Source: Octopus sinensis
Lineage: Eukaryota
Length of the DNA: 64,000 bases
NCBI RefSeq assembly: GCF_006345805.1
Contig: NC_043001.1
Location: 38,626,001 to 38,690,000 of the forward strand
Direction: 5' to 3'
The first letter of the stretch is position 1; the number at the start of each line of letters is the position of its first letter. The translations under genes and the position numbers were made by a program. The notes beneath the pieces are model-generated. The model saw nothing but the letters and a program-made list of their open reading frames with translations. It did no database searches and had not been told where the DNA came from. This document shows positions 12,476 through 48,780 of this stretch, piece after piece.

Positions 12476-12502
12476 CAGCAGGCTTCTTCCTACTTGTATT
12501 GT
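12476..12502 (-). pseudogene. Array copy 5: pseudo-exon (donor mutated to ATAAAC)
   Basis: Homologous to copies 3/6/8 (DNTSRKKPA frame), but the GT donor is lost. Confidence 0.6.
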
Positions 12503-15146: not shown

Positions 15147-15197
15147 CATAGGTTTCCTTGTTTGGTTTATTGACTTTAGCATAAAGGTCATTCATAT
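15147..15197 (-). CDS. Array micro-exon copy 7 (51 nt): DMNDLYAKVNKPNKETY
   Basis: ttccctaaag| acceptor and G|GTAAGC donor; open frame. Confidence 0.78.
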
Positions 15198-19666: not shown

Positions 19667-19717
19667 CATCAGCTTGCTTGCTTGGTTTATTGACTTTGGC
19701 ATAAAGTTCATTCACAT
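19667..19717 (-). CDS. Array micro-exon copy 10 (51 nt): DVNELYAKVNKPSKQAD
   Basis: ttctttaaag| acceptor and G|GTAAGC donor; open frame. Confidence 0.78.
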
Positions 19718-20558: not shown

Positions 20559-20600
20559 CATTAGTTTTCTTTCCTGGTTTATTGACTTTAGCATTCATAT
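20559..20600 (-). CDS. Array micro-exon copy 11 (42 nt): (N/D)MNAKVNKPGKKTN; DLY removed by in-frame 9-nt deletion
   Basis: ttccttaaag| acceptor and G|GTAAGC donor; in frame. Confidence 0.65.
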
Positions 20601-24220: not shown

Positions 24221-24299
24221 ATATTTAAAGGGCTAAAGAACCACTATGTGGTCAGCCATATATGTATATATATATATATATATACATACATCTATATAT

Positions 24300-26020: not shown

Positions 26021-26029
26021 CCATGGTGA

Positions 26030-26608
26030 GGAAGCAAGGTCTAGAATCAAAGGGCCTTAGGGTTAACCTAGCAAAGACCAAAGTCTTAGTAAGTAGGAAG
26101 GCTGTCAAATCACAACCTCCTTCAGGTAGATGGCCTTGCTCGATCTGTAGAAAAGGCGTGGGTAGAAACTCCACATGATGTACCCAGTGTAAGCTATGGA
26201 CACACAAAAGGTGCAGCAATATCAAAGGAAGTTTAACTGGGACAATAGTTTTTGTGTGTGGCTGATGCACTGGGGCAATAAACACTGGAGATGTACAGAA
26301 AACAGATTCCATCACATTCCAGGGGAAGAAACTAGAAGTAGTTAATAGCTTCTGGTACCTAGGCAACAAAGTCTGTAGTGGGGCTGATTGCTCTGAAAGT
26401 GTAGCGACTAGAGTAAGAATAGCCTGGGCAAAGTTCAGAGAACTCCTACCTCTGCTGGCAACTAAGGGCCTCTCGCTGAGGGTAAAAGGTAGACTGTATG
26501 ATGCATGTGTGCGAACTGCCATGCTACACAGTAGTGAAACATGGGCCATGAATGCTGAGGACATGTGTAGGCCTGAAAGAAATGAAGATAGTATGATCTG
26601 CTGGATGT

Positions 26609-26643
<35 letters not shown>

Positions 26644-28290
26644 TGTGTACAGTGCACAGGTGCACTACAACTCATCTAAAGTGTATATATAATCAGGTGT
26701 AGTTTCGGCGGATTTTGGAAAGCATGAGGGCCTTAAAAGATGCAGTGTCATGGCAGTCAACAACTGACGCAGGCAGTTTATTCCATGCTTCAGCAACTCT
26801 GAGCGTGAAAAAATGTTTCCGAAAGTCATGGGAGCTGTATTGTTTTCTGACTTTGTAGGCATGTCCACGTGTGTTAGACACATGGAGATCAAAAAGGTGT
26901 TCAGTGTTGTTGTTGGTGAGGTGGTTGATAACTTTGTGGGTGTTTACCAAGTCCGTCGCCAAACGCCGGAGCTTCAGTGAATCCATGCCCAGGGAAACAA
27001 GGCGCTCAGAATATGGTAGGTGTCTGATGGAGGGTATGCGTTTGGTTGCACGTCTCTGGACAGATTCCAGGAGGTCAATGTTCTGTGCAAGATAGGGGTT
27101 CCAAACTGATGATGCGAATTCCAAGTGTGGTCGTACCATAGCTGTATACAGTTTTAAATAGATGGCTGGAGAGCGGCTAACAAAAGACCTGCTGAGTGAT
27201 GCCAAGACACCCTCGGCCTTCCTGACAATCTTAGAGATATGCTTTGACCAACGCAAATCACTGCTGACAGTGATGCCTAGGTCACGCTCGCAAGAGGATT
27301 TCTTGATATCAGTGTTGTGGAGGGAGTAAGTGAACGCAGGGTTTTTTCTCCCAAAATGCATGGTGGTACACTTGTCCACAGCCAGTTTCAGTTGCCAGTC
27401 TGTGATCCATTGCTGCATTGTGTCAGTATGCATACACAACAGTGTGTAAGCGCCCTGAGAGAAAAGTTGGGCATAAGAAGCATCAAATGTGGTGTGCAAG
27501 AGAAGTAACTGCGCTGGTATGGCCATGTATTATGTATGAATGAAGACAGCTGTGTGAGGAAGTACCACTCCATAACTGTAGAAGGAACTGGTGGAAGAGG
27601 TTGATCCAGGAAGACAAGAGGTGGTGAAGTGTGACCTTTGAACATTGGGCCTCACAAAGGAAATGACAGAAGACAGGGACATCTGGAGCTGTGCAGTGAT
27701 TGAGAAGACCCGGTAACTAAAGTGAGATCACAGCCATGCACATCTAGCCTTGTTAAGAATACTCCTGATACGTCAGGCGACATGATATGCTTGAGAAAAC
27801 CTGTTGAGTCAAGTAAAATCAATATCGTAGCTGGGGCTGGTGCTCCTTGACTGGCTCCCATGGCGGTGATACGTAAAAATCACCAACTGAACATGGCTGA
27901 TACCAGTACCCTCAGACTGGCTCCCATGCTGGTGGCATGTAAAAAGCACCATCTGAACATGATCGATACCAGGTCTGCCTCACTGGCTCCTGTGCCAGTG
28001 TCACATAAAAAGCATCAACTGATCATGACCGATGTCAGTACCCACTGACTGGCTACTGTGCCAGTGGTATGTAAAAAGCACCAGCTGAATGTGATTGTTG
28101 CCAGGCCCACCTTATTGGCTCTTGTACTGGTGGCACATAAAAAGCATTCACTAGATTCTTGGAGTCGTTGGTATTAGGAAGGGTATCCACCTGTAGAAAT
28201 TCTGCCGGACCAGATTGGAACAGCTGGTTCTCTAGACCTCTGTCATACTCTCCAACCCATGCTAGCAAGGAAAATGGACGTTAATCGATG
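26030..28290 (+). mobile_element. 5'-truncated RTE-clade LINE, interrupted by a CR1 fragment
   Basis: GLESKGLRVNLAKTKV...WPCSICRKG...AWAKFRELLPLL...SETW; resumes at ~27420 with REKLGIRSIKCGVQE, then the 3'UTR and a (GAT)n tail. Confidence 0.88.
26611..27420 (-). mobile_element. 5'-truncated CR1-clade LINE nested in an RTE
   Basis: Open C-terminal frame (ERDLGI, VRPHLEFAS.VWNPY, LESVQRRATK, NTRGH..K, HFFTLRV..WNKLP). The 3'UTR carries the hairpin agtgcacctgtgcact and an (ATT)n tail. The host RTE sequence tgtaa|tgtcag is split around it. Confidence 0.9.
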
Positions 28291-28318
28291 ATGATGATAT
28301 AGATATACCTATATATAT

Positions 28319-28349
<31 letters not shown>

Positions 28350-28354
28350 CTATA

Positions 28355-30610
28355 ACCTAGTCACCCGTATAGTCAACCAGGTGATACACGAAGGAGTCAT
28401 ACCCAATGACTGGTGCAGCAGCATACTAGTCAACTGCTACAAAGGTAAAGGTGATGCCCTAGATACAAATAATTACAGAGGTATCAAGCTGTTGGATCAA
28501 GTAATGAAGGTTACGGAGAGGGTCATAGCCCAACTAATTAGAGAGAGAGTTAGTTTAGATGAGATGCAGTTTGGGTTCGTGCCAGGGAAAAGTACCACTG
28601 ATGCTATATTCCTGGTAAGGCAGCTGCAGGAGAAATACCTAGCCAAAGATAAGCTCCTGTACCTGGCTTTCGTTGACATGGAGAAAGCTTTTGATAGGGT
28701 CCCCCGATCCCTTATCTGGTGGTCAATGAGGAAACTAGGGATAGATGAATGGCTGGTGAGGACTGTGCAAGCCATGTACAGAGATGCCGTAAGTAAGGTT
28801 AGGGTTGGCAACATGTACACAGAAGAATTCAAATAGAGGTTGGGGTCCACCAGGGTTCAGTACTCAGCCCCCTCCTATTTATCATAGTACTCCAGGCAAT
28901 TACGGAGGAATTCAAGACAGGCTGTCCCTGGGAGCTCCTCTACGCTGACGACCTTGCTCTTATTGCTGAGTCACTATCAGAACTGGAGGAGAAGTTCCAG
29001 GTGTGGAAGGAGGGTTTAGAATCAAGGGGCCTTAGAGTCAACCTAGCTAAAACCAAAGTACTAATAAGTAGAAAGGTAGACAATCCACAAATATCTTCAG
29101 GAAGATGGCCCTGCTCGATCTGTAGAAAAGGTGTAGGTAGAAACTCTATAAGATGTACCCAGTGTAAGCTATGGACACATAAGAGGTGCAGCAATGTCAA
29201 AGGTAGGCTAACTGGGAAGATAGTTTTTGTATGTGGCAGATGCTCGGGAGCATTAACCTCCGAAAATCTGCAGAAAACAACTTCCGTCACTTTCCAGGGG
29301 GAAAAACTAGAAGTAGTTGATAGCTTCCGTTATCTAGGTGACCAAGTCAGTAGTGGGGGTGGGTGCGCTGAAAGTGTAACTGCTAGAATAAGAATAGCCT
29401 GGGCAAAGTTTAGGGAGCTCTTACCTCTGCTGGTGACTAAAGGCCTCTCGCTCAGAGTAAAAGGCAGACTGTATGATGCGTGTGTACGAACAGCCATGCT
29501 ACATGGCAGCGAAACATGGACCGTGACTGCTGAGGACATGCGTAAGCTCGTGAGGAATGAAGCCAGTATGCTCCGATGGATGTGTAATGTCAGTGTACAT
29601 ACTCGACAGAGCGTTAGCACCTTGAGAGAAATGTTGTACCTAAGAAACATCAGTTGTGGTGTGCAAGAGAGACGATTGCGCTGGTATGGTCATGTGGCGA
29701 GAATGGATGAAGATAGGTGTGTGAGAAAGTGCCAATCCCTAGCAGTTGAGGGAACCCGTGGAAGAGGTAGACCCAGGAAAACCTGGGACGAGGTGGTGAA
29801 GCACGACCATCGAACTTTAGGCCTCACTGAGGACAATGACCGGTTGAGGCAAGCGAAGTCGATATAGAACCTCATCCGACGACAGACACCCATGCCAACC
29901 CCCCATGCTTGCGAAGGACATGTTGGGGAGCGAAATCGAAATCGAAATCGAAACCGAATTGAACCAGCCAGGATCCCTGGCCTGGTGGTACGTAAAAAGC
30001 ACTATCCGACTCGTGGCCATGGCACGTAAAATACTCCAATGCGACCGTACGACAGGCACCCATGCCAACCCCCCTTTGCTTGTGAAGACATGTTGGGGCA
30101 AGCGAAATCGAAATCGAATTGAACCAGCCAGGATCCCTGGTCTGGTGGTACGTAAAAAGCACTATCCGACTCGTGGCCGTGGCACGTAAAATACTCCAAT
30201 GCGACCGTACGACAGGCACCCTTGCCAACCCCCTTTGCTTGTGAAGACATGTTGGGGAAATCGAAATCGAATTGAACCAGCCAGGATCCCTGGTCTGGTG
30301 GTACGTAAAAAGCACTATCCGACTCGTGGCCGATGCCAGCACCGCCTCGACTGGCTTCTGTGCCGGTGGCACATAAAATACACCAATCTGACCGTGGCCG
30401 TTGCCAGCCCCGCCTGGCACCTGTGCAGGTGGCACGTAAAAAGCACCCACTACACTCACGGAGTGGTTGGCGTTAGGAAGGGCATCCAGCTGTAGAAACA
30501 TTGCCAAATTAGACTGGAGCCTGGTGCAGCCTTCTGGCTTCCCAGAACCCCGGTCGAACCGTCCAACCCATGCTAGCATGGAGAACGGACGTTAAACGAC
30601 GATGATGATG
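28355..30610 (+). mobile_element. Relatively young 5'-truncated RTE-clade LINE with expanded 3'UTR
   Basis: ORFs 28381-28836 and 29001-29867 are consecutive RT segments (QFGFVPGKSTTD, HQGSVLSP, YADD in the intervening frame, YLG, GSETW, RLRWYGHV); ends in a (GAT)n tail. Confidence 0.93.
29875..30335 (+). repeat. ~165-170 bp tandem repeat (about 2.7 copies) with internal (GAAATC)n in the RTE 3' region
   Basis: accc(a/t)tgccaacccc recurs at ~29887, ~30057 and ~30218. Confidence 0.85.
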
Positions 30611-31378: not shown

Positions 31379-31420
31379 TGTTAGGTTTCTGTGTAACATT
31401 AACATAAATATCTTCCGTAT
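31379..31420 (-). CDS. Unique micro-exon (42 nt, phase 1-1): (N/D)TEDIYVNVTQKPN, YxN motif
   Basis: Strong acceptor tttttatttcatctcttag| and strong donor A|GTAAGT; length divisible by 3; open; same phase as the array exons. Confidence 0.75.
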
Positions 31421-31739
31421 CTAAGAGATGAAATAAAAATGAATTTATTTATTAGCTGCAACTGTTTCTCAGGTAAAATGAGTAGGAAAATATTAATGAT
31501 TTAATATTAAAAAAAAATTCAAACAAAGAAAGCATAACAAAAAGAATGAATTATCTAAATTATCAATGCAAGCAAGATAAATGAAGCCAAGGAACAAATA
31601 TCTATTTTTCATAACCAGCAATATCTATGAATATGTGAGAAGTATTGTTGTTGCTGATGTAGGCATTCAGTCCCAAGTTAGAGCAATGATCATATGTCTT
31701 CTATTCCATATTTCATTCAGACAGGATACAATGCATCCT

Positions 31740-31910
31740 TTTCTTTTTAAGGATGCAGAGGGGATAAGTTGATTACTTATTACTCCAATCCTCAAGTGGT
31801 ACTTATTTTATCAACCCTAAATGGATGAATCTGAACTCAGAACGTAAAGACAGATGAAACACTACTAAGCATTCTGCCTGGTGTGCTAATGATTTTGCCT
31901 TGCCTTGTGA
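31740..31910 (-). mobile_element. tRNA-derived SINE fragment
   Basis: Reverse complement of the SINE head seen in tandem at 61.3-61.9 kb (atcattagcac.cc.ggc.gaatgcttag...gttctgagttca). Confidence 0.7.
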
Positions 31911-32959
31911 AGATATTGATAATACATAAAGTGAAACAGTTTTAACTGAGTGCTGAAACTGCATCATGGGAATGATTTTGAAAAACCAACTCACATTATA
32001 TAAAGCATACAGTATAGAATAAACAGAATAGAAACTCTGGATTATGGTAAATATTAATGAGTAAAATCTTAAGATGTAAGACCCTGAAGTTACAATTCGA
32101 TTCCAACTAGAGGTAAGTTGAGGTAATTTGCTGTATATGTTGTGAGTACACACCTATGGCATACAAGTAATCAGATGAACAACTAAATATGATACACAAA
32201 TGTAATATAAACTATAAAGTTGAGAAATAAATTCAATTTAAATTTAACTATACAGCAATTCTTCAAACATCTTTAATTCTTCAGCATTCACATTACTCTT
32301 TCAACTGTAATGCTTATTTATTCACATTGATTTGAGTTCTTGTATCTTTGAGATTCAATGATATGATTGCCTAGTTTTGGAATGACAGTAAGGTAGGCGT
32401 GAGAAATCTAATCTGATCAGTTTGAACATAAAATGGGAAGAATATTTGGGTCAGATCTGGCCGGATTAAATGCTAAAGGGTAATTCTAGTAAACTATGTA
32501 CAACTTCAGCAAAAATCTATTAAATGCATCTACTGTACCTCTTCCCATCATTGCTACTGTATTGTTAAATTACTTAATTTCGTTCTTTTTTTATTCCTAT
32601 AATATTAACACATTGTTTATAGTGCTTTGTTTGATAATATTAGGAGTAGCTTCAGAGTATGGAACATATCACAACAGTTTTATTATCTTTAATTAATGAA
32701 ATATTTAAGAAAAATATATTTTGTTTACTTCCAAATCTTAGTGCATAAAACTAATTGTTACTGTTATTTCATTCTACAATCAAGCACACAATCTAGAAAT
32801 TGAATAAAAAAAACAACTTAACCACTAAAATTTAAGTAGCCTACTATATAGTCTCTTATTATTATGCTTCTGCCTGGGCAGAAATCATCATCTATAACAA
32901 TTTTTTTGGTTGCCAACAGAGGTAAAAACTCTGAATTTTTTTTCAGCCTATTCTAATTC

Positions 32960-33300
32960 AAGCAATTACACTTTTGCAACATCCTCCTCCATTGCAAATT
33001 ATGTCACTTAGGAACAGAAATTATCTACAACCTCTAGAGAGCCTCCAGGGCACTCAAGAAAATCAATTTCTCATGTATCTGTAGACTTTATAGCTCTTGT
33101 GCATCTTTCACACACAAGCACTACTTTCTCCATTAACCTTCCTGTGATTCCACTGTGAGTCCATCACTTACACTAGGTCCATTGAACAGAACTCCTGCCT
33201 ACACCTTTCCTACATATCAGGCAGGATTATTTACCTGAAGCTGTTAGGGTCCAGTCTGTTTCCTTGCTTACTAGGACCTCGGTCTTTGCTCAGTTAATTT
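32960..33300 (-). mobile_element. Degenerate RTE fragment
   Basis: Minus strand reads GVGR.SVQ.T*CK*W..SGITGRL.EKVV.VCERC, the zinc-finger region of the RTE family. Confidence 0.7.
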
Positions 33301-34479
33301 CATACATATATATGGTTGAAATTTATAGAAAAACAAAAAATGAAGACAGATGTATGAACAATAAGAAGTTGTATAAGTTTGATGTTTAGGAAAGTGGAAA
33401 AGTATTTTACATTTCAAGCCTACACTCTTCAATAGAAAGGAATAAGAGAAAATAAAAGAGAGAAAATAAAAAAACCTTGTGGATTTAGTAGTCAAGCATG
33501 GTGACTGGTTAGAAAAAAAGGTTTGACAGGAGAGGTTGAAAGAAGGGGAGATAATAAAGTATTAGCAATTTCAAAACAATGGTGTGCATGCATGTGTGAG
33601 TACATGAGAATGTGTGTGTGTGGATAGGGGCCAGTGACTTTGATGTGTGTGTGTAAGTGTGTGTCTGTGATGTGTGGATGATGGTGTGTAGGTGATGGTG
33701 TGTGGTGTGGGTGCTGGGAAGGGGTTAGTGCTAGTGTGTGTGATGCGGTGTGTATGTATAGCTAGCTAGATAGATAGACAGACAGATATAATCATTTAAC
33801 ATCTGTATTCTATGCTGGCATGGGCTGGGCAGTGAGACAGCTTCAGATGTATCAGAGTACTGGGTTGAGTATCAGTACTTCTTCAACATAATTTCTATGG
33901 CTGGATGTCCTCCCTCATGCAAACTACTTTACAGAACATAGGGAGTGCATTTTTCATGGCACTGCCACAAGTGATGTCACCAAGTAACTCAAAACAAAAA
34001 AAAAAATGAAGTGTAGGAGAGAGGGAAGTGGCTTTATATAAGAGGCTAAAGTATGATAGTGGGACAAGAACAAGTGTCTTGCTGCAAAAAAGATATACAG
34101 TTACCCTGCATTATATAAGGGTGATTTGGAGTAGCTGGAAAAAGAGATAAAAATAATGGTGAACCTTCAAAGTACAAAAAGATAAGTATAAGAAAGAAAA
34201 TAAACAGAGGATTGGAAAAGGGAAATGGGTAAGTTTGCAAGAGTGTGAGAGGCGACAGACAAAGAGGAGTAGAGGCAAACCACACACATTTATTGTGTTG
34301 AATCAAAAATTTTGCAATATTTTGGTAACTTTTTTGTTTTATTCATCAAATTACAACAAAAGCAGCCTAGCATTCAGAGTAGATTTCATCAACATGCTAC
34401 CTTCCTGTTAGCTCTTTGATCCCATGATGAAACCAGTTCTTTTTTTTTTTTGAGGCAAAGAACTCCTTCACTGAATCAT

Positions 34480-35010
34480 CTAATACCTAATGTGCATAAA
34501 CAGCAGTTAAGCAAGGGCCAGATTCTGGAACCTGTTGCCAAAACTTGGGTGTTTCAAATACAAGATGATTCTCTGCATCATGAAGGGATAATTCACTGTG
34601 AGTTCACTTTGGACAGCTGAACCACTGACACCAACCTGTACTCTGAATAGTAGGAGTGGATGTATGCCATTGTGGCAAAAATAACTTGCACTGATTAACA
34701 GAAAGCAAGCTCATCTGTAGCCTAACAATGCAAGTACTTACAAGCTCAAACAACTCAGAATATACCCAGGAACTTGAGGGACTGAACTGATGTCACACCT
34801 AGTATATAGACTGGACCTCAGATTATTACTTGTTCTGATCCATGGGTCACCTCTAAAACTTGTGAAATTTATCAATCAAGAGGAGGTGGAAGCTTCAGTG
34901 AAGGAGTTCTTTGTCTTAAAGGATAAGAACTGGTATCAGCATGGAATCAAAGAACTGACAGAAGGGCTGGCTTCAGATGTTGTAACATGGTGGCATCTAC
35001 TTTGAATGCT
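34480..35010 (+). mobile_element. Mariner transposase remnant
   Basis: Decayed catalytic region: KMIL...GIIH.E, LINRKQ..L..NNA, H..Y..DL...DY.LF, F.NQEEVEASVKEFF..KDKNWYQHGIKEL. Confidence 0.8.
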
Positions 35011-35339
35011 AAACTGCTTTTGTTCTAACTTGATAGATAAAGCAAATAACTTATCAAAATATTGCAAAACTTTTGACTCAACACAATACACACATACATA
35101 CAAACAAACAAACAAATAATCAATCAATCAATAAATGACATTTGAAGCGACAAGTTGCATATTTAGTGTGGTAGACTATTTTATAAAAAATTCGATGAAT
35201 ACTATCTCCAACTTTGAAGCCACAGCTATCAGCCTTGTTAAATAACTGGTTAATCTTCAAATGAATTAACTGAGGGAGACTTTTATTCATGTAGTGGTTT
35301 TTAAATGAAACCTAATTTTATCATGCAGATTTACAACAA

Positions 35340-38070
35340 CATGGCTCAGAATAAAAACAAAAGCTCAACAGGTAAACAGATTCTTTTTAGCTGTAGTTAT
35401 AGAAGAAACTGTAAATACAAAACACATTTTTCTTGGAGTTATGAACTGAATACTGATTTACTTAACTGATATAAAAGAGTGAAAGAAAATCCTGTTGTTG
35501 GATATATGAATAGACTGAAATCATACTGGGACAATCTCCACCCAGAACTAAATAATTTCACTACAAAACAATTAGGTCCACAAGCAACATTAGTGGAACA
35601 TAGGAAAATTAGTGAATGTAAACTGTATTAAAAGCAAGATCTGAAATTAACCATCTCCCAAACAATATAAACAAAAATGTGAACAATGTTATAACATATG
35701 GTTTCACAGTTAGTGACATTTCAACAGATACTATACTGCCTGCCAGCCAAACTACATTACAGGCTAAAGCAATTAACCACTGTCCTTCTACTACAACTAT
35801 AGTAAATAGCAGGCACAACTGCAACGATCATTGTAGTAGTAACAGACAGGGTTATATCAGTGAAATATGCCCTTAATACAATTTTTCAAGAAAAGCTTTG
35901 AAGTACTCTCTCAAAGAGAGCGTATTCTCTACAAAAATAAGCCAAATACAATGAAATTAGAAAGGTGTATTTACAACAGTGTAATGAGCCTTCATTCTGG
36001 TATATTAATGCCTGTGTATATGCCTGGTTTACTACTGCAAAGCTGTACATGAATGACACTCAGAAAGTAAACAAAACCAAAACAATGAAGAAAGTGCCAT
36101 CATAGGTTTTGAAGACAAAGAAAAAGACAGTTGATTTACAGAAGACAATCAGCTATGTGATGATGTTTATTGCTTGCAAACAAGCAAATCACTATATGTC
36201 TCACTAACAAAAAGTAAAGGAGATAAAAGTGATGTCTGGAGATAGCAAAAGGAGAACATTCAATTGCAAACTGATGATCCGTAAGTAGGAGCTAAAAGCT
36301 GCCAGTAAGAGACTCCAACATGAGACGAGAATAACTCAAAGAAAAGCAATAAAAAAAGTAATAACTGGAATCAGGCAGCTGTGTGCAGAGACATGAGAAG
36401 AGAAGCAGTAAACATCATAGAAACTCCTTCACAAGAAGACATAGACTCCTTCTGGATAAAAATCTTGAGTGAAGACATGGAGTTTAACCAAGATGCTCTT
36501 TGGCTGGAAGAAATTCGAAGAAGTTATTGTCTCTGCATTACACCCAAGACTTACAGCATTGATGATGATACCCTTAAAACTGTAATCCAGAAATTTCAAG
36601 ATAGAAAGGCACCTGGAAGAGGATTGTTGGCTACTGGTACAAGAAGCTAATCTTCTGCAAACATTATCGTATCAACCTGTACCAGCAAGCTCTCAATGGG
36701 AATAGTAGCATACCACACTGGTTAGTTCTGGTAGAGACAAAACTGATCTCCAAAAGCAGAACCACCCACACAGCCACAAACTATCAACCAACTGCATCCC
36801 AGAACTTAATGTATAAAATATATACAGCCTGTTTAAACCCCTTCCTCCAAAACCATTGTGAAAGTAATAACATTATCACAGCAAAACAAGCAGTTGGGAA
36901 GAAAGGTGTCTGGGGATGTGCCAAGCAATTGTTATAAACAAATTTAATGACAGATGTGTGGAAGCATAGAAGGAACCTAGTTTCAATGTGGCTGGACTAC
37001 AAGAAAGCCTTTGACTCTGTTCTCCATTCATGGATGCTAGAAGCACTTGACTTGATAAAATTCCAGTGAGCATAGTCAGAGCCATAGCTGACCTGACTTC
37101 ATCATGGGCCACTATCTTGAAGTTATATACAAAGAATAATTGAATTATTACTGACAGAATACAGAGGTGTGTCCCAAGGGGATAGCCTCTCTGTGATGTT
37201 CAGATTTTTGGTAAACCCCTTGTCAATCATGTTAAGGAAGTCTCAAGGGTATCTCACTGATTAACAAGAAAATGGAAACACCAAAATAACACACTGTTTC
37301 TTTGTGGATGAATATGAATGAGATGAAAAAGAGCCTTGACTTGGTTACAAAATTTTCAAGAGATATAGGATTGGAGTTTGGTCAGGATAATTGCTATATG
37401 GTTGTGAAAAGAGGGAAAACTGTAAACCAGACTAGCAACATCTCCATCAATGACTTAACTGTTTCCCCTGTATCTGGTGAGGAATATTACAGGTACCTAG
37501 GAGTGGAAGAAAACACAACTTATGATGGCATCTGTAACAAAACACATGTCACTAAAGAATATTACAGCTGAATAAAAAAATATGGACCTCAGAACTCTCT
37601 GCATTCAATAAAACAGTGGCCCACATTTGGGCTAATTGACTGGATATTTGATGAGATCCAACCCGTTGATGTGAAAACCTGGAAAATACTAACGAACTCA
37701 TATGATTTCCACATCAACTTTGATGTAGACTGCCTCTACCTAAAATGAAAACAAGATGACAGAGGCTTAACATTGATCCAAACTGCATTTGAATGTCCTG
37801 TCCTAACTCTTCAGCAACATCTTTAACCACCAAGTGTTGAAGTTCATCCCTTGACCAAGTTTGCGCACATGAGGCTGATAATATCATGAGTCTTGAAAAG
37901 CAGTTTCTTGAGCAGCATTCCTTGTCTGATAACCTTAAACACGTGCCCAAGGAAGTCGCATAACTGTACTGCAATGTATCATCAGATGAAAGGATGAGCA
38001 TTTATCAGCAGAAGACCATACATGGGTATGCTAACAGAAAACTCCTGGGTAATAGTAGCTGTAATATGAG
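35340..38070 (+). mobile_element. Degenerate R4/Dong-like non-LTR retrotransposon
   Basis: Fragments in order: GYMNRLKSYWDNLHPEL, PSQEDIDSFWIKI, KAPG, WLDYKKAFDSV, GVSQGDSLS, F-FVD, FSRDIGLEFG, YRYLGVEE, DVDCLYL. Many stops. Confidence 0.85.
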
Positions 38071-38199
38071 GAACAAATTGCAATTCACCTACGTTTCAGT
38101 GTCGACTGTCCAGCTGAGTTAAATCTGAGTCACACCATACCAGTCTGACCTAACACTAGAACCTACAGCTAATTCCCTTTCTAGCTTGCATGTCAATGC

Positions 38200-39090
38200 A
38201 CATCTGTCCACTCCCACTGCCTGAGGTCAAAGCAGCCCACGCTAGTCCTACTTCCACCTACTTCCTAATCTCTCTTCTGGTAGGACCCCTCAGGTATTGA
38301 TGTCATTGACCATTTCCTCCCAGTTCACCTCATCTCAAAAATCACCTCACTTCACTCCATGTTGAAATCTGCCATCCACCTGTGTAGATGGCTCACTCAC
38401 TGTGATTTCTGCAGGGATGGAGTGCTGTCCACTTCCTCTCCTCCACTTTCGTTGTCCAACAAAATAACAATTCTGTGAACACTGAAGACATGATGCAGCA
38501 TTCCATCTACCGAGATATTATTTTTGGAATTAATAGCCATCACTGTCCCTCTGTTCCACTGAGATGTACAGAGTGACTTTGGATGCTTGATGCAAACTTC
38601 ATCTTCCTACCTGCACAAAGGTAGGCTCTCTCTTTTCCACAAGGTGTTGTGATGCTGTACATGGATGTTGCCATTCATACTTGAATATTGTTTTGTGTAG
38701 CAAGGACTCCTCAGCCTGTCCTGATCAGGGTGACATATTGTACCAAAATACTACTTCCATGGCCTTGATCATGCGATGGTGTCTTTCCATGATTCCATTT
38801 CTACTCAGCCATTCTGCTGAAGTGGTGTACATTTTACTTATTGAGTATCTCCTTTAGCACCTTTGAACAAAATGGAGTGTTGTTGTCTGACTGTCAGCAA
38901 TTCATTCACAGGGACCTGCCCCCAAAAGATCTCATTCAAGATAAGTGCAACCTCATCTGCAGTGCCCATCTTAATTTCCCTTCATATTGCTTTCTGACCT
39001 GGTCCACAGATAACCATCAAGAGATATATCCCCTGCCAGTAATGTGTCACATCCACTGCCAATCATCTCTAGTTGTGCTCTACTGAGATG
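38200..39090 (+). mobile_element. Penelope-like element remnant
   Basis: Decayed RT-like text ending in GPQITIKRYIPC..NV..IHC...LY, similar to the GIY-YIG segment at 53.0-53.4 kb. Confidence 0.55.
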
Positions 39091-39094
39091 TTTC

Positions 39095-40700
39095 TTGGCT
39101 CATGCACACCCAAAAGGAGGGTCGAATGATTGACACCTATCACAACTCCCGACTACTTTTTGAATGCTCTGCTTAGTAATGTTGGAGACAACCTTCCTGG
39201 TAAGATACAGGCTTCTATCTATGCCCATATAATTCATGACATGCAGTCTCCTTAGTTCTGAGGCACCTAGCCAACACACTGCAGTTATACTCTGCTCCAA
39301 ATCTTCTAGCACTGCCAACCAAGCCTTTTTCACCCCAGTTGGAATGTATGCCTTATTCTTGTCTGAGGGCACAAAGACCACACTCAGCTTCAAACCAAGT
39401 TTGACAGCTAGCTCTCCCAGAACCCCTAGGTGGCACTTTATTAACAACTCTGCAGCCTGTTTGTTTTGAACCCTCCTTTCATTGGTGATCACTGATCCCA
39501 CTCATCCAAGTACAGTAGTCGAATCAGTTCAGATTTTGATAAAGTGCAGCTCCATTTCAGGGCCAGATTCCCCCACTTAAGCATGTCATCTAACTCAGCG
39601 ACATTTTTGGAGCCAGGCTGTGATTGGATAGTGACCCATTAGTCTCCCACACATTGAGAATAGTTCTTGTCTGTTGATGCTAGTACCCAGTTCCAGAATC
39701 TCATTTGCTCTCGAAAAGAGCAACACACTGTTTTGTCTCTTTGAAGCTTGAGCCCCAGTGCAGCTCCTCCAACCTTTGGCTCCGGTGTTTTCACAGTTAG
39801 CTTGAACACTTTTATGTGACTTATGACCTTTGCAGAAGACACTAAAGTCCAGTACCGGCCTATCCTTACCCTTCGTTGCCTGCACCACAACCATTAGTGG
39901 CAGCACTCTGCTCTTCACTTCCTTCTTCCACAGGATTAAGATACCCTCCTTGATCCATTTTTCTACCTCTCTTTCAAACTTGCTCTTGGCATCTCCTTTC
40001 AAGGTATGCTGATAACAGCTTAGCCTGTTCCTCAGTGTTGGGGGCTCTCCTTTCTGGTACCACTCAGCCATTCACTGCTGACAGTTGAACACTGCCTGAA
40101 AATCCTTAACCTCAATGGTGTAAGCGGTACAACCCTCTGCCCCCTCTCTTGTTGCAGACTCATAGTGCATGACACCTCTGCACCATCAAATGAAACCATG
40201 TCTCTACAAACACTGACATCACCTAGGCAATAAATTGCACACTACCTTCTCCACTTTGCTGCTACCTTTACATCCAATTTCACTGCTGTTAAGTGCCCTA
40301 ACACTACTCATCCCCTTACACTTGTTTTTGTCACCCTTGGTGTCATGAGAGACATTGTGCAGCCCATATCCATGAGGGCTTTGAACACCTTTCCTCCAAC
40401 TAAGACTTCAACTATAGGTGCAGCACCTGCACGAGAGCCTCTACTTGCTCACATGGGAAGTTTGAAAGGCAGCAACTTCCCCATGGCTTTTTCCCTGGCT
40501 TCAGATTCAAGTGATATACCCTGTCCACTTGTACCGGTAGCAGATGGGTTTGGCTTTGTCTCCACACAGTCCCTTGCCATGTGCGGTCCCTGGCACAATG
40601 CACCCCTAAGACCTCTCAAATCATCCAATGGAATATGGACAAGAAAAATGAGAGATAGTATGCAAAAGAGAAAACCACGTTGGTACATGTGACGTATATG
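39095..40700 (-). mobile_element. Internally deleted Gypsy-type LTR retrotransposon remnant
   Basis: Minus-strand order: gag knuckle (LCQGPHMARDC), protease (VLVGGKVFKALMDMGCT), RT N-terminus (FEREVEKWIKEGIL..LPLM.VVQ.TKGK.RPVLDF), RNase H end (VFVPSDKNKA), integrase zinc finger (GIDRSLYL..CDRCQSFDP). Confidence 0.85.
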
Positions 40701-42297
40701 GATGATGACAGCATCATAAAAATTGTTGTGTACTCAGAACGGACAGTGATATATAGAAGGGGAAAATCTAGATAGACATGAGATGGCATTCACTCACTAT
40801 CCTCTCTCTGCAGTCTCTTTACCTGAAATACTTTCAGTATATTCATCCTCTGCTCTTCTCCCCACCTGTAGCAGACCCTTCAGCCTTTCTTTTTTTTTCA
40901 CTACTTCTGTTATATTCACCCACTTATTCTCCACAGCTATATTTCTTCTTTTAATGTTCTTTCCCCATAATAGCTCACCTCAATACCATCTTATTTCTCC
41001 CTCTTTCATTGACACCCTTGATTCCATCACATCTCATTAGGTCAATGACCCTTTTGTTGCAACCTCTCTGGATTCTTACTACCTTTAGCTCTTTAACGTA
41101 TGTTCCCTCTACTACCATATTTTATTTAAAACATGGAGAAGCATTGGATACCCTCCATTTAATTCATTCCATTACTCTTACTACTCTGTCTGATTCTCAC
41201 TAAAACCAAGTTGCTTGTTTATGTGGATAAACACAAACTACATTAGTTCTCTGGTTGGACAAGGTCTAGAGTCTGTAGGTCAGAGCAGCATTAATACACA
41301 GAGATTTGTACTCTCTTCTCAACCAGGTCCATCACTCTTTTTAGGTGTGACTAACAGACAAGTATGGAGCAATTCACCTATCAATTGTTATTGAAGTCAT
41401 GTCAGTACATCTCCCTGCTGTGTGCAACACAACTACCTTTCCTTCTCTTTTCTAAGGGAGTTAGGAATCACGCAAAGTGTAATGTAAATATCACTGTATC
41501 ACAGTATTGATCAGACTACCAGATGTTGTTATACACTGCTGGTCACAATGCACTTCCAATTCTGTCCTGATTGTACAATTCTTTTCCATCTTGATCCGAA
41601 CGACTTGACCAGATCATCCTCCTTTGTTGTGAAGTTCTTCTAAGTGGCCTTTCCAATCTTTTGGATACTATTTAGCAACTGCATGGATCCATCAGTTGTC
41701 TGTGAACTTTGCGACATGTTTGGCCCTGCAGAACTTGTGCCTTTGATATTTTGTGATCACATCATTCATTCTGATCCATTCTCAAATTATCTCAACCAGA
41801 ATAATGTAAATACATAAATTAAAAGATTTTAAGTGCATTTTCTTTGATGTCAGTTTTCAGTAACTCAGGACCAGCAATCATTTACTTATGCTTTACCCTT
41901 TTTGTTGCTCTTTAATGTGTCAATCAATTTGTTCTTATTCCCAAGTTCCATCTTACTGATTTTTCATTTGTTTTTGTAATGTCATTTTCTCATTTATTTA
42001 GTTCATAAGTTCCAGTATTAAATATTTTAAGAAAAGAATGTGGGGAACATTTTAAGAAGAGGGGAAAAAATGATGATGTAACAATATTGGGTTAAGTTCT
42101 AAAGAAAGGCTGGAAGTGATGAAGATAAAGTAGTCACAGATTAGGATGTTTTAGTTTGCCAAGTAATGTGATATACATTTGGGTGATTGAGGGACTATTA
42201 GGAAAGTTAGATTATTAATTTAATTAGGCAAATAAATAAATGAATAAATAGAGAGCAACAAAAATAAAACATAAATGAAAATCACTAGGTAATATAC

Positions 42298-42354
42298 TTA
42301 GGTCAGTTAAGTGTCCAGATGAATCATAGATGGCATTGGCAACCTCGTGTACAT
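42298..42354 (-). CDS. Unique micro-exon (57 nt, phase 1-1): (N/D)VHEVANAIYDSSGHLTDL, NxxY motif
   Basis: Acceptor tttctattcatacattttcag| and donor AA|GTATAT; length divisible by 3; open. Confidence 0.68.
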
Positions 42355-43442
42355 CTGAAAATGTATGAATAGAAATGCATAAATACTTTCTGTATTTATT
42401 TCCATATATCAAAAAGTAATTAAATTTATGACACAGACAAGCTATATTAACCTGAATTTATTTTAAATTTTAATGGACTTTTAAAAAATAGAATTGTTTG
42501 TAATGTAAATACATTCTAAAAACTAGGATGCTTTTAAGGATCAGTGCTTTAACTTCGATTTCTCGCTGTGTGTGAGAGTGTGTGTACATGTGAACACACA
42601 TGTAACTTTCACTCATCGATATCAATGAAATGATGTAAGCACTGATGAGGAAAATTGATTTCTAAACTAAAATACTATGTTCTGCTTTGAAATGTTTATA
42701 AGTTAGTGCTAAAACTGCTGGTGGTTGCTACTCTTTTCTTTATGTCAACAGTAAACTTTTATCTCCTACATTGCTCAGTAAAAAGCTTCATCTTTCAACT
42801 AACAGCTAGTCCTACATCTGTAATAGGAAGTGGGCCCAAACAAAGAAGAAATTAGACATGTGTCTTAGTGTTTTATAATGTTGATTAATAAATATTTCCC
42901 CTTGTTTTTAAAGTAATATTTTTTCCAATAAACCAGGTATGAAAGAATGTTTGATTGTGATGCTGATAAGATTAAGCAATACTTTATAAAATAAAGATTG
43001 TATATAGAGAAGTAGTTTGGGAAAACAGTCATCAGTGTTATTTTTGTATTGTGGACAAAATCTATCATTTGAACTGAAATGCATAAAACTCCTCAAATCA
43101 ACAAAATTTCATCCCAGAATCTATCCAAGATACTCTATCTTATGATTTAGAAAATTAATTCAAAAGTAATGAAGGAATGGATACAATATTTGATAACAGA
43201 AATTAATTTTGTTCAAATAAGAATAGTCTTAAGAATTTCTTAGTGGCTTCTGGATGGCTTCTTGCCCTTTTTGAGACATTGTAAACTGGTGAGTATCGAG
43301 AGGGGGAAGGTATTAATGTCACAACTTGCATTTTCAATTCTTTACTGTCAGTAGAATTAGCTCATTGACAAATACTATCTGATCATAAATGGTTAAATTT
43401 TTGATCTTTTTATTGCACTAGCACAGGGAAACTTTAAGTTAC

Positions 43443-43454
43443 TTTCTATATAAT
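43443..43454 (-). CDS. Candidate 12-nt micro-exon (phase 1-1): DYIE
   Basis: Acceptor tttctttttgaaaccctag| and donor AA|GTAACT; separated from the 33-nt exon by a 69-nt GT-AG intron (43455-43523). Confidence 0.5.
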
Positions 43455-43523
43455 CTAGGGTTTCAAAAAGAAAATCCTTTATTTATAAGTTTGTATCAAT
43501 AAGAATAGAGGGTGCCAAAATAC

Positions 43524-43556
43524 CTTCTGTATTACGATGTTGAAGATCTCTTCCAT
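43524..43556 (-). CDS. Unique micro-exon (33 nt, phase 1-1): DGRDLQHRNTE
   Basis: Acceptor attaatactatag| and donor AAG|GTATTT; length divisible by 3; open. Confidence 0.58.
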
Positions 43557-43890
43557 CTATAGTATTAATAGCTGGAAACAAATGGATAGAATACATTAGC
43601 TCAAATAGTAACAAAAGTTATGAAAAAAACTGAATTATTATTTCTTAAAAGTCAATAAAAAGCTTAAGTCTTAGAATAATAAACAAACTGAGTTGGTGTA
43701 TTTTAAAAAGTGAAACTGACATTTGTTCTAAAATTTTTTATACCCAATATAATAAATTGTTATTTTAAAGTGTGACAAATGTAAGAAAATATACTTCAAT
43801 AATTTTGGGGTTGTAAATTGAATAATGACCTTGGTATCTATCATGGTGCATGTATATATAAAAGTATGCATTGCATATATAACATACACA

Positions 43891-43892
<2 letters not shown>

Positions 43893-43954
<62 letters not shown>

Positions 43955-43960
43955 GAGAGA
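43893..43960. repeat. (GA)n microsatellite
   Basis: Direct reading. Confidence 0.95.
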
Positions 43961-44109
43961 GAAGCAAAGAAATTTTCAGTTTCTAAAAAAGAATGCTCTT
44001 TGTGATGTGGGCTTGCTAATTTTGCATAAATGAGATCACTATGAGGGATTAGCAGGGTCAATAAGGAGGTTGTACTGCAAGTTCTTGGCATAAATAATGA
44101 TTTTGTCTT

Positions 44110-45010
44110 GATAGGGTGTTCTGACAAAATTTGATAATTTTTGGTTTTCTTTTTCAGGAAAGGTTGATGTATTGGTGAACTAACAATGGCATTGAAAGTA
44201 TAAAAGATTTTAAGTTGTAGTTGAGAAAAATGTTAGCTGATATGGAGGACTGGAAGCCGTCTGAATATCAGGAAAAGTGTTACCTACATCTGATGATTGC
44301 CACCAGATATAAAAATGCCAACACCATGACTACTGCTGAATTCTCTGTGAATGCCATAAAGGCTGTAAGACTAGGCATGGACAGCTGCAATGGAGACTAT
44401 GAAGCCATGATCAACAGGAAGAGACAGTGATGTGATGTCATCTTGCTCCCATCTTTGAACAAAGCCTCAGGCTCAATTTAGATGGCTATATAAAGCTGGT
44501 GGAGACTGTGATCAAACACTGGCTGAAAAGGATTACTGCTGGAAGGTCACATATGTGGCAGCATGATTCAGGACATTGCCATACCTCCAGAAAGTGTCAA
44601 AAGTGGTTGTCCAAGAATTTCTACAACTTCACCAACTCCAATTTCTGGCCTCCTATTTATCCCAATTGTAATCCCATGAGTTACTTTGAGTAAGGTGTTG
44701 TTGAGAAAGGCACCGACTGCTTTGCCCGCAACACATAGCCAAGCTGGTGGTCAAAGTCAAGGAGGTGTTCAAAGACCTTCTCAGAGACATAGTGAGGAAC
44801 ATATGTGCCAGGTTCCAGAGCCATCTTGAGGCTGTGGTGGAAGCTGAGGATGACTACTCTGAGTAAACTTGAGGCTGTGGTGGAAGCTGAGGATGACTAC
44901 TCTGAGTAAACTGTTATCGCCCAGCCATAATCTAGTTAATCCTTTTTGATTTTTAAAAAATACTTTCAATCTTTGAGAAAGAAGAGTTCTGTCAACTTGA
45001 TTTGTTCTAC
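44110..45010 (+). mobile_element. Internally deleted Tc1/mariner-superfamily transposon (duplicated at ~46090-46990)
   Basis: WQHDSGHCHTSRKCQKWL..NF..F....WPP..PNCNPMSY...GVVEK ... CARFQSHLEAVVEA is a mariner-like second half; the central region is missing. Confidence 0.8.
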
Positions 45011-45479
45011 ACATACTATATCAAGTTTACATGGTACCTTCTTCAACTGAATAAGTGATAGGTCTAGCCACCAATGTCATCACAAGTCACTCTTGTATTA
45101 GAGCACTGGAAATGGTATTCTGTTTCATATTAAAGCAACCAAAAGTTATTCTAATATTTTGTGGTGAATTTCTGTCAAAGACAGGAATATGCTTGGTTAT
45201 ATTCTAATTAACTAACTTTGAGGGTAGTAATCTTATGATAAACAATTTGTATTAATTCAAAATTAGAAAAAGTCAACTCTGCAGGGTAATTGGCACTAGG
45301 AAGGGCATCTAGGCATAAAAGCCATGCCAAAACAGACACTGAAGCCTCGTGCAGTCTTCTGCTTAGTCAGCTCCTGTCAAGCCATCCAACGCATGCCAGT
45401 AATACAAGGTAGACATTAAATATATGATGGTGATGTTTACATACATACATATAAACGTATACAGACATATACATATATA

Positions 45480-45940
45480 CACATCATCATCATTGTCATT
45501 TAGTGTCTGCTTTCCATGCTGGCATGGGTTGGACGGTTTGACTGAGGACTGGCAAACTGGAAGGCTGTACCAGGCTCCAATCCAATCCAGCAAAGTTTCT
45601 ACAGCTGGATGCCCTTCCTAACATCGACCACTCTGAGAGAGAAGTGGATGCTTTTTATGTGCTGCCAGTATGAGGGCCAGTCAGGTACTGGCTTTTTACG
45701 TACCACCAGCCAGCACTGGCATTGACTACACTTGAATGGTGCTTTTTACATGCCACCGGCATGGGAACTAGTCAGTTGGCACTGGCAATGATCATGCTCA
45801 AATGGTGCTTTTAACGTCCCATTGGCACGGGTGACAATCAGGCAGTACAGTCATTGGCCATGACAAGGATTTCACTTGCTTCAACAGGTCTTCGTAAGCG
45901 CAGTTTATTGCCCAATGATTGAAGGGTACTCTGAAATGGG
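45480..45940 (-). mobile_element. RTE 3'UTR fragment
   Basis: (TCA)n tail and repetitive 3'UTR like 24300-24830. Confidence 0.8.
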
Positions 45941-47419
45941 TGAAGCAAAGAAATTTTCAGTTTCTAAAAAAAATGCTCTTTGTGATGTGGCTTGCTAATT
46001 TTGCATAAATGAGATCACTATGAGGGATTAGCAGGGTCAATAAGGAGGTTGTACTGCAAGTTCTTGGCATAAATAATGATTTTGTCTTGATAGGGTGTTC
46101 TGACAAAATTTGATAATTTTTTAGGTTTTCTTTTTTCAGGAACAGTTTGATGTATTGGTGAACTAACAATGGCATTGGAAAGTATAAAGATTTTAAGTTG
46201 TAGTTGAGAAAATGTTAGCTGATATGGAGGACTGGAAGCCGTCTGAATATCAGAAAAGTGTTACCTACATCCTGATGATTTGCACCAGATATTAAAATGC
46301 CAACACCATGACTACTGCTGAATTCTCTGTGAACGCCATAAAGGCTGTAAGACTAGGCATGGACAGCTGCAATGGAGACTATGAAGCCATGATCAACAGG
46401 AAGAGACAGTGATGGTGATGTCATCTTGCTCCATATCTTTGAACAAAGCCTCAGGCTCAATTTAGATGGCTATATAAAGCTGGTGGAGACTGTGATCAAA
46501 TACTGGCTGAAAAGGATTACTGCTGGAAGGTCACATATGTGGCAGCATGATTCAGAGACATTGCCATAACCTCCAGAAAGTGTCAAAAGTGGTTGTCCAA
46601 GAATTTCTACAACTTCACCAACTCCAATTTCTGTTTCTGGCCTCCTATTTATCCCATGTAATCCCATGAGTTACTTGAGTAAGGTGTTGTTGATAAAGGC
46701 ACCGACTGCTTTGCCCGCAACACATAGCCAAGCTGGTGGTCAAAGTCAAGGAGGTGTTCAAGACCTTCTCAGAGACTAGTGAGAACATAGGGCCAGGTTC
46801 CAGAGCCATCTTGAGCTGTGTGGAAGCTGAGGATGACTACTCTGAGTAAACTGTTATCGCCTATCCATAATCTAAGTTAATCCTTTTTTATTTTTAAAAA
46901 ATACTTTCAATCTTTGAGAAAGAAGAGTTCTGTCAACTTGATTTGTTCTACACCTACTATAATCAGTTTACATGGTACCTTCTTCAACTGAATAATGATA
47001 GGTCTAGCCACCCAATGTCATCACAAGTCATTCTTGTATTAGAGCACTGGAAATGGTATTCTGTTTCATATTAAGCAACCAAAAGTTATTCTAATATTTT
47101 GTGGTGAATTTCTGTCAAAGACAGGAATATGCTTGTTATATTCTAATTAACTAACTTTGAGGGTAGTAAATCTTATGATAAACAATTTGTATTAATTCAA
47201 AATTAGAAAAAGTCAACTCTGCAGGGTAATTGGCACTAGGAAGGGCATCTAGGCATAAAAGCCATGCCAAAACAGACACTGAAGCCTCGTGCAGTCTTCT
47301 GCTTAGTCAGCTCCTGTCAAACCATCCAACACATGCCAGTATACAAGGTAGACATTAAATATATGATGGTGATGTTTACATACATACATATAAACGTATA
47401 CAGACATATACATATATAC

Positions 47420-48780
47420 ACATCATCATCATTGTCATTTAGTGTCTGCTTTCCATGCTGGCATGGGTTGGACGGTTTGACTGAGGACTGGCAAACTGGA
47501 AGGCTGTACCAGGCTCCAATCCAATCCAGCAAAGTTTCTACAGCTGGATGCCCTTCCTAACATTGACCACTCTGAGAGAGAATGGTGCTTTTTTATGTGC
47601 TGCCAGTATGAGGGCCAGTCAGGTACTGGCTTTTTACGTACCACCAGCCAGCACTGGCATTGACTACACTTGAATGGTGCTTTTTACATGCCACCGCATG
47701 GGACTAGTCAGTTGGCACTGGCAATGATCATGCTCAAATGGTGCTTTTAACGTCCCATTGGCACGGGTGACAATCAGGCAGTACAGTCATTGGCCATGAC
47801 AAGGATTTCACTTGCTTCAACAGGTCTTCGTAAGCGCAGTTTATTGCCCAATGATTGAAGGGTACTCTGAAATGGGTTGGTTATGCTGCACTGGCATAGG
47901 CCACAGTTACAGTCTCACTTGGCTTGCCGGGTCTTCTCAAGCACAGCATATCTCCAAAGGTCTCGGTCACTTGTCATCGCTTCGGTGAGGCCAAACATTT
48001 GAAGCTTGTGTTCACCCATGTCATCCCAGGTCCTTTGATATTGCTGCACCTCTTGTGTGTCCATAGCTTACACTGGGTATATCTTATGGAATTTCTATCT
48101 ACACCTTTTCTACAGATTGAGCAGGACCATCTACCTGAAGGGATTTGTGGTTTGTCTGCCTTCCTACATTTTAATACTCGGTTTTTGCTAGATTGACTCT
48201 AAGGCCCTTCGATTCTAGACCTTGCTTCCACACCTGAAACTTCTCTAGTTCTGACAGTGACTCAGCTATTAGAGCAAGGCCATCACCATAGAGAAGCTCC
48301 CAGAGGTATCCTGTCTTGGATTCTTCCATTATTGCCTGGAGGACTATGATGAATAAGATGGGGCTGACGACTTGATTCTTGATGGACCCCTACTCCTACC
48401 TGGAATTCTTCAGAATACTTGTTGCCAACCCTCACCTTACTGACAGCATCCCTGTACATGGCTTGTACAGTTCTCACTAACCAATCATCTATCCCTAGTT
48501 TCCACATTGACCACCAGATAAGGGATTGGGGGACCCTGTCAAAGGCTTTTTCCATGTCAATGAAAGCTAGGTACAGAGGTTTATCTTTGGCTAGGTATTT
48601 CTCCTGCAGCTGTCTTACCAGAACTATAGTATCAGTGGTGCTTTTCCCTGGCACAAACCCAAACTGCATCTCATCGAGACTGACTCTCTCCCTAATTAGT
48701 TGGGCTATGACCCTCTCCATGACTTTCATTACCTGATCCAATAACTTGGTACCTCTGTAATGCTGTTTGTATCAACCAGG
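47420..48780 (-). mobile_element. Internally deleted RTE-clade LINE
   Basis: 3'UTR, zinc-finger segment, and RT segment MDQVMKVMERVIAQLIRERVSLDEMQFGFVPGKST...DMEKAFDRVP. Confidence 0.88.

Follow-up and report, generated by a model that had tools for sequence, protein, structure and literature searches.

In the closest described systems the SH2 domain of Csk docks onto short tyrosine motifs: its site in Cbp/PAG is YSSV (PMC3492796), phosphorylated EPIYA-A or -B segments, the EPLYA motifs of Bartonella Bep proteins and the EPIYA motif of mammalian Pragmin are reported to be bound likewise (PMC3593179), and the printed EPIYA-A peptide contains the hexapeptide YAKVNK (PMC6721621), a full-text literature search for which led us to the papers on EPIYA motifs. 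Here we analyze a 64-kb stretch of animal genomic DNA (contig NC_043001.1, positions 38,626,001 to 38,690,000; the whole of it is called the window and is numbered from its first letter), whose minus strand carries an array of duplicated micro-exons encoding YAKVNKP. We put at slightly better than one in two the probability that an unannotated animal gene has its 3′ part on the minus strand of the window and that its protein carries a disordered tail made of duplicated phase 1-1 micro-exons and works as a Csk/Grb2 scaffold. A phosphorylation-dependent scaffold is the most likely function, which is a claim about a mode of working and not about membership in a family. A sequence-only reading of the same DNA had dwelt on four small exons upstream of the array, but the object of interest is the array itself, together with the cross-species family of motifs to which its exons belong.

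Peptide libraries place the optimum of the Csk SH2 domain at pY-[T/A/S]-[K/R/Q/N]-[M/I/V/R] (pY, phosphotyrosine), and YAKV fits it at all three positions; the simpler Csk preference pY-[small]-x-V is likewise matched, at the level of the motif, by YAKV in five exons of the window. This assignment, already made in the sequence-only reading, appears sound to judge by the agreement with the YSSV pattern (PMC3492796) and by the presence of YAKVNK in EPIYA-A (PMC6721621, PMC3593179). Cbp/PAG1, a transmembrane adaptor of vertebrates, resembles the tail described here in being disordered and in carrying several phosphorylatable tyrosines, and YSSV and YAKV have in common a small residue at +1 and Val at +3. 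The Csk site of PAG is presumably also followed by N-K-P, as in the window. The two differ in that Cbp/PAG1 combines one Csk site with Src-type YEEI/V sites, whereas the window has five identical Csk-type sites, and in that the Cbp/PAG1 tail is not known as the product of a tandem micro-exon array; as to orthology, the protein searches detected no homology to PAG1 and no named homologue, and the window contains no transmembrane or palmitoylation (CxxC) exon and no YEEI/V. EPIYA-type effectors resemble the locus in that the motif has been multiplied by duplication inside a disordered region, and differ in that the motif in the window is animal-encoded, has [DE]-L before the tyrosine in place of E-P-I, and is copied as separate exons and not as repeats within one open reading frame (ORF).

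The YAKVNKP exon array

Eleven exon-like block copies lie between 3.4 and 20.7 kb within larger repeat units of 0.9-2.7 kb. Five are intact 51-nt exons encoding D-x-x-[DE]-L-Y-A-K-V-N-K-P, two have lost the tyrosine and carry in-frame deletions, and four, referred to as type B, are without an AG acceptor. In the lines below, bits refer to a position-specific scoring matrix built from 16 motif instances, all of them from other organisms, and splice ranks here and throughout refer to a generic donor-plus-acceptor matrix applied to 1,553 candidates in 3-45 kb.

20559-20600, minus strand: array copy with an in-frame 9-nt deletion, DMNAKVNKPGKKTN; Tyr lost
19667-19717, minus strand: intact array exon, 51 nt, VNELYAKVNKPSKQAD; 30.7 bits
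18127-18177, minus strand: intact array exon, VEDLYAKVNKPRMQTD; 44.4 bits; its 11-mer VEDLYAKVNKP is identical in proteins P0002 and P0003
16929-16980, minus strand: type-B pseudo-exon, VVNLYPKDNTSKKKPA; AG acceptor lost
15147-15197, minus strand: intact array exon, MNDLYAKVNKPNKETY; 26.7 bits
14255-14306, 12476-12527 (donor also lost) and 5717-5768, minus strand: type-B sister copies; AG acceptor lost
6598-6648, minus strand: intact array exon, VEELYAKVNKPRMQTD; 43.4 bits
4328-4378, minus strand: intact array exon, VNDLYAKVNKPSKKTY; 31.7 bits; 6-nt intron deletion, GT donor still there
3462-3506, minus strand: last array copy in the window, in-frame 6-nt deletion, GVNDLNVNKPSKKPE; Tyr lost; strong splice sites, rank 2 of 1,553

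The substitution pattern among the intact copies is of a coding type. Across the LYAKVNKP core the five exons vary at just four sites, all of them third positions and all synonymous, and identity is 95% over the 22 nt that lead up to the acceptor, versus 75% at the non-core exon positions, where changes are mostly non-synonymous. Such a core with synonymous changes only, set in a variable remainder, agrees with a short linear motif that sits within a disordered chain. The deletions of 9 and 6 nt that the two degenerate exons have suffered both keep the frame, and on the foreign-only matrix the five intact exons reach 26.7-44.4 bits, against a maximum of 14.0 in 60 simulated 43-kb sequences. 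Together, these observations make the intact 51-nt exons look truly coding.

The SHP-type function that the sequence-only reading had also ascribed to YAKV did not hold up. An immunoreceptor tyrosine-based inhibitory motif (ITIM; [S/I/V/L]-x-Y-x-x-[I/V/L]) needs I, V, L or S at -2, and the corresponding switch motif (ITSM) reads T-x-Y-x-x-[V/I]; at -2 every array copy has D, E or N, and so does the 42-nt exon discussed below. A proposed likeness of NxxY to the PTB-binding NPxY fared no better: there is no Pro, across the array Asn alternates with Glu and so is not conserved (VNELY, VEDLY, VEELY), and upstream the NxxY occurs only as NAIY, in an exon that found no support.

The type-B subfamily (…LYPKDNTSKKKP…) was duplicated together with the intact type, and its frame is open in four of four copies despite the lost acceptor. 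Two further candidates in or near the array were rejected. A second recurrent exon in the array units (CVSHT...DYGQ; 16073-16117 and 13398-13442) has perfect donors and was discarded because its other copies have a stop or a lost donor and its substitutions show no third-position bias. The other is an ITIM-like MITYARV (21157-21168, minus strand), read from an open stretch that immediately precedes the first array copy; usable splice sites are lacking there, and it probably arose by chance.

Four segments upstream of the array

Four micro-exons of 33, 12, 57 and 42 nt had been proposed to extend the array frame upstream. All four segments are present exactly as described, on the minus strand, with AG before and GT after, an AT start, a length of 3n, open phase 1-1 and the expected peptides; the implied introns along the chain measure 69, 1,088, 10,877 and 10,778 nt, and the chain enters the array exons without a stop. 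Stop-free chaining is automatic, since any phase 1-1 open segments can be joined in this way by construction.

31379-31420, minus strand: micro-exon 4, 42 nt, N-TEDIYVNVTQKPN; apparent diverged member of the array family with a Y-x-N (Grb2-type) site; supported
42298-42354, minus strand: claimed micro-exon 3, 57 nt, NVHEVANAIYDSSGHLTDL; splice rank 239 of 1,553; not supported
43443-43454, minus strand: claimed micro-exon 2, 12 nt, DYIE; splice rank 150 of 1,553; donor gtaact without G at +5; not supported
43524-43556, minus strand: claimed micro-exon 1, 33 nt, DGRDLQHRNTE; splice rank 202 of 1,553; no Tyr; not supported

The 42-nt exon stands apart from the other three. Its acceptor (tctcttag) and donor (gtaagt) place it at rank 14 of 1,553, beside the array exons at 17-23, and when all AG sites of both strands, the array excepted, were compared without gaps from the acceptor onward with the array exons, position 31420 came first of 5,340 sites by both nucleotide identity (23/35) and BLOSUM62 score (24). 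An identity of at least 23 arose in 2% of 400 simulations (one strand of a simulated 43-kb sequence), and the joint match of identity, protein score and an in-phase open GT donor arose in none of the 400. Counted in codons from the acceptor, the tyrosine has the same position as in the array, with an acidic residue at -2, an aliphatic one at -1, Val at +3 and K-P shortly after; a pattern drawn up post hoc, AG/AT-N6-GAN-NTN-TAY-N6-GT (the slash marking the splice boundary), fits only the five intact array exons and the 42-nt exon, with 0.03 matches expected. Its first place in register, the 0/400 joint matches and an array-like splice score indicate that this exon is related to the array; our preferred reading is that of an ancient array-exon paralogue, by now diverged, with a site that appears to have turned into Y-V-N-V.

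Grb2-family SH2 domains require Asn at pY+2, and YVNV in the 42-nt exon has it there, which makes it, at the level of the motif, a Grb2-type docking site. The Y-x-N site named in the sequence-only reading can thus be retained as a predicted one. LAT's own Grb2 sites we take to be YVNV as well; LAT and the window have Asn at +2 in common, and the window differs in having a single such site and no homology to LAT.

The 33-, 12- and 57-nt segments are most likely chance AG...GT open stretches and not exons. Open phase-1 segments of 12-60 nt and length 3n between AG and GT number 534 on the minus strand and 379 on the plus strand of 31.3-43.6 kb, with a simulated expectation of 477±31 (second-order Markov); 73 of the 534, 22 of them containing Tyr, score at least as well at their splice sites as the weakest claimed exon (68±12 in simulations), and the claimed segments have same-length competitors in plenty (50 candidates of 12 nt, 25 of 57 nt). 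None of the three donors (gtaact, gtattt and gtatat for the 12-, 33- and 57-nt segments) has G at +5; the 57-nt segment has a good acceptor, ttttcag, and a weak donor, gtatat (score -1.0). No copy of any of the three was found elsewhere in the window, the 33-nt segment included, nor any similarity to the array or matching protein in database searches, and blastn with an array exon and its flanks recovered all 11 copies of the array but gave no match at 31.4, 42.3 or 43.5 kb. The regions of all four claimed exons are single-copy in the window. On the cross-species matrix the tyrosine contexts of the 12- and 57-nt segments score -27.6 and -22.6.

A model in which all four segments are real and spliced in series to the array, in a gene of at least 40 kb whose tail would thereby gain four distinct Tyr contexts upstream, is in our judgment very improbable. 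The AG/GT borders, equal phase and AG/AT start that the segments have in common with the array exons speak for it, as do the good acceptor of the 57-nt segment and the fact that, with 32778-32792, the claimed four complete the set of AG/AT...GTA candidates outside retroelement ORFs in 31.3-43.6 kb. That very set, however, suggests the criterion behind their picking: an AG/AT start is shared by 35 of the 534 candidates, so that in the claimed exons it was probably a means of selection and is not independent evidence. Further points against the four-exon chain are candidate numbers at the simulated frequency, splice ranks of 150-239, three donors without a +5 G, the implausibility of a 12-nt exon with weak sites, and three segments that resemble neither the array, nor each other, nor any database protein. 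Three of the four upstream micro-exons are therefore unfit for a gene model without transcript data. The minus-strand gene with a disordered multi-Tyr tail, as originally conceived, keeps its Y-x-N (YVNV) and repeated YAKV sites and loses these three exons, and its documented span shrinks from at least 40 kb to ~28 kb (31420 to 3462).

A 48-nt variant of the first segment (43524-43571) has a better acceptor, tttccag, and splice rank 10 of 1,553, and an in-frame ATG lies just upstream of the claimed exon; neither is evidence for an exon here.

Motif relatives and the missing 5′ part

Searches with the joined peptide at E<=10 returned three proteins, P0001, P0002 and P0003, all matching at the level of the motif only, and a search of PDB sequences gave two weak, irrelevant matches to troponin I (E≈1). 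P0001, a small protein from a read assembly, begins with a signal-peptide exon and continues through a short ectodomain and a single membrane span into a tail bearing ALYAKVNK, ELYAKVNK, DLYATVNK, IYENT and DYNNI. Its relatives by HMMER, P0020, P0022 and P0023, each have two [LM]YA[KT][VI][ND]K sites followed by EEIYAN[TN], so that these four small single-pass membrane proteins combine 2-3 [LM]YA[KT][VI][ND]K motifs with a YxN-type site and pair Csk-type and Grb2-type sites as the window does. They differ from it in having tail and transmembrane segment in one exon (L001, L005), the order of sites reversed and no P after NK, and outside the motifs they show no similarity to it. The short-intron contigs concerned (L001, 199-576 and 753-1444; L005, 285-1109) bear, in tandem, genes whose products are small type I membrane proteins with Tyr motifs in their tails, and a conserved 3′-UTR (untranslated region) element (…AACATTTTTAATTTATATGGAAATTTTT…) is common to both.

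Two metagenome assemblies supplied the eukaryotic contigs that encode P0002 and P0003. The ORFs of both start within an IRS-type PTB domain, at its C-terminal half; when the upstream exon is added they match PF02174 (E=6e-13), and DDMYAKVNKP and VEDLYAKVNKP follow. A second gene in contig L004, in opposite orientation and with the same kind of PTB, ends ...VEDLYAKVNKPKHRQKEQ before its stop. These adaptors, of the Dok/FRS kind, carry VEDLYAKVNKP identical to the window 1-3 times in the C-terminal tail, and differ from it in the presence of PF02174 and in the placing of the motif within the exon of the PTB C-terminal half instead of in separate micro-exons. The genes (L002, 8155-10387, plus strand; L004, 2691-4164, minus strand, and 8099-10285, plus strand) are small, unannotated, of three exons and arranged head to head, with an acidic N-terminal exon containing Y-x-N or TYARV, a PTB split over two exons and a tail with 1-3 VEDLYAKVNKP, and look like an undescribed family of PTB adaptors. 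To judge from these sequences, the YAKVNKP motif is a genuine coding element that recurs in no fewer than three architectures.

On the minus strand of the window no EGF-like or EMI, Cys-rich or other domain-like open frame was found outside retroelements. A hydrophobic-stretch scan of the window for a transmembrane exon gave hits in inverted or low-complexity repeats only, and tblastn with the L002 PTB sequence found no match across the 64 kb, beyond which 5′ exons may lie. Whatever domain the gene carries towards its 5′ end, a transmembrane segment or a PTB, probably lies outside the window. The likeness to CED-1/Draper/MEGF10 that had been drawn from the tyrosine motifs gains nothing from these searches: the window has no EGF-like, transmembrane or other receptor exon (the 5′ part may again lie outside), and the tail contains no NPxY and no YxxL. 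By motif its closest relatives are the small transmembrane adaptors and the IRS-type PTB adaptors, so that a cytosolic adaptor would be just as conceivable as a receptor.

Should the tail belong to a cytosolic IRS/Dok-type PTB adaptor instead of a membrane receptor or transmembrane adaptor, a possibility that we regard as on balance unlikely, the full 11-mer VEDLYAKVNKP, which the window shares with PTB adaptors only, and the position of the motif directly after the PTB domain would be accounted for. Set against this are the PTB search of the window, which came back empty, the placing of the motif in an exon of the PTB C-terminal half and not in micro-exons, and the pairing of YAKV-type with Y-x-N sites, which is seen in the transmembrane family. 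Since it is the upstream part that is missing, the PTB alternative concerns that part only and does not conflict with a Csk/Grb2 scaffold tail.

Several observations weigh against a functional gene with a Csk/Grb2-docking tail. No transcript-derived or predicted protein joining any two of the exons was found at E<=0.01 among 5.8 billion proteins, assemblies of public sequencing runs included; the cross-species matches are singly marginal (E=0.057 to 3.3), and a common motif this short could be convergent. Nothing convincing by way of a terminal exon or stop codon was found in the window below 3462, and neither an upstream domain-bearing exon nor a transmembrane exon was found within it. Intron sequence immediately 3′ of the array exons is conserved as well as the exon or better (85%), as are further blocks of the repeat unit, so that conservation alone is not a mark of exons, and the four type-B and two Tyr-less copies show part of the array to be decaying. 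The 42-nt exon has no flanking DNA homology with the array by blastn and scores just 0.6 on the YAKV matrix, its motif being a different one. Finally, the SH2 partners are predicted from vertebrate and bacterial-effector data, that is, from organisms other than the source of this DNA.

Some of these points would equally suit a decaying relic, in which a tandemly duplicated fragment of a former gene, or else an exonised repeat, had given rise to the array and exon 4, neither of which would now yield a protein. We consider this improbable. The missing terminal exon, the search without a transcript-derived or annotated protein, the equal conservation of non-exon parts of the repeat unit, the six defective copies among 11 (four acceptor-less, two Tyr-less) and the LINE (long interspersed nuclear element) insertions inside the array all favor it, but five copies have retained both splice sites, the frame and a core of eight invariant residues in which all changes are synonymous, both exon deletions are in frame, and the single donor deletion recreates GT. 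Absence from databases is, moreover, weak evidence, because the best database relatives of the LINE at 7579-11633 (flatworms among their sources) are just 37% identical; with relatives no closer than this, the element family and probably the host species too are thinly covered in public protein sets.

The locus is embedded in retroelement-dense DNA with a G+C content of ~38% and long microsatellites, in which no tRNA or Rfam family was detected across the 64 kb. The transposable elements recognized are as follows.

7579-11633, minus strand: LINE with two ORFs, Exo_endo_phos and RVT_1 domains; sits in the array intron between exons 15147 and 6598
25534-30579: reverse-transcriptase/LINE fragments; fill the intron between exon 4 and the array
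38-41 kb: retrovirus-like fragment
48.3 kb: further reverse-transcriptase fragment
57.5 kb: DDE transposase fragment

The LINE at 7579-11633 has overlapping ORFs, ORF1 of 389 aa and ORF2 of 1,048 aa, the latter with endonuclease and reverse transcriptase. No database entry identical to the LINE ORF was found. A tandem duplication of ~1.94 kb at 43765-48000 includes stretches of 100% identity (45402-45643 = 47341-47582) and a SINE-like (short interspersed nuclear element-like) repeat (45.4-46.0 and 47.3-47.9 kb), a further copy of which lies at 24232-24875 and which may resemble cephalopod (octopus) SINEs. At 49006-50688 a 1.7-kb (TGTA/TGTATGTG)n microsatellite gives rise to many spurious long ORFs on both strands. 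An inverted pair at 62929-63213 (minus strand) and 63369-63626 (plus strand) encodes two peptides that resemble each other, …PKTPNEGWTVYQPKHCVSNKEDGDKYPSNVN… and …PKTPDEGWRVYQPKRCVSNKQDEDRYLSNVN…. Its probable source is a transposable element, present twice or represented by its ends, and one copy mimics a transmembrane segment followed by CC.

A candidate Csk- and Grb2-docking tail

In the order of the proposed tail, the diverged 42-nt exon (...EDIYVNV...) would come first, followed by the array with its five intact and two Tyr-less units of D-[VM]-x-[DE]-L-Y-A-K-V-N-K-P. If the gene is expressed, we infer that a Src-family kinase would phosphorylate the tail tyrosines, whereupon each pYAKV may dock the SH2 domain of Csk, at up to five sites, and pYVNV that of a Grb2/Drk-type adaptor. 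In this way the protein would gather Csk, the brake on Src kinases, beside a Grb2 output, much as scaffolds of the Cbp/PAG, Dok and LAT type. Furthermore, as all exons are symmetric, skipping could alter the number of docking sites and leave the frame intact.

To our knowledge, how Csk is recruited to Src-family kinases outside vertebrates is not settled, and we know of no recognised invertebrate orthologue of Cbp/PAG. It is tempting, if speculative and in our own estimate doubtful, to see in this locus an invertebrate functional counterpart of Cbp/PAG, with up to five Csk sites tunable by skipping of 51-nt exons, which together with the transmembrane and PTB adaptors sharing its motif would form an undescribed and widespread non-vertebrate module for Csk recruitment. 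The motif also coincides with the site used by bacterial EPIYA-type effectors, and so bears on the question of which host sequence these imitate. An 8-11-residue motif that fits the Csk SH2 domain and recurs in three architectures from unrelated samples would, in any case, be a testable candidate for the missing Csk link.

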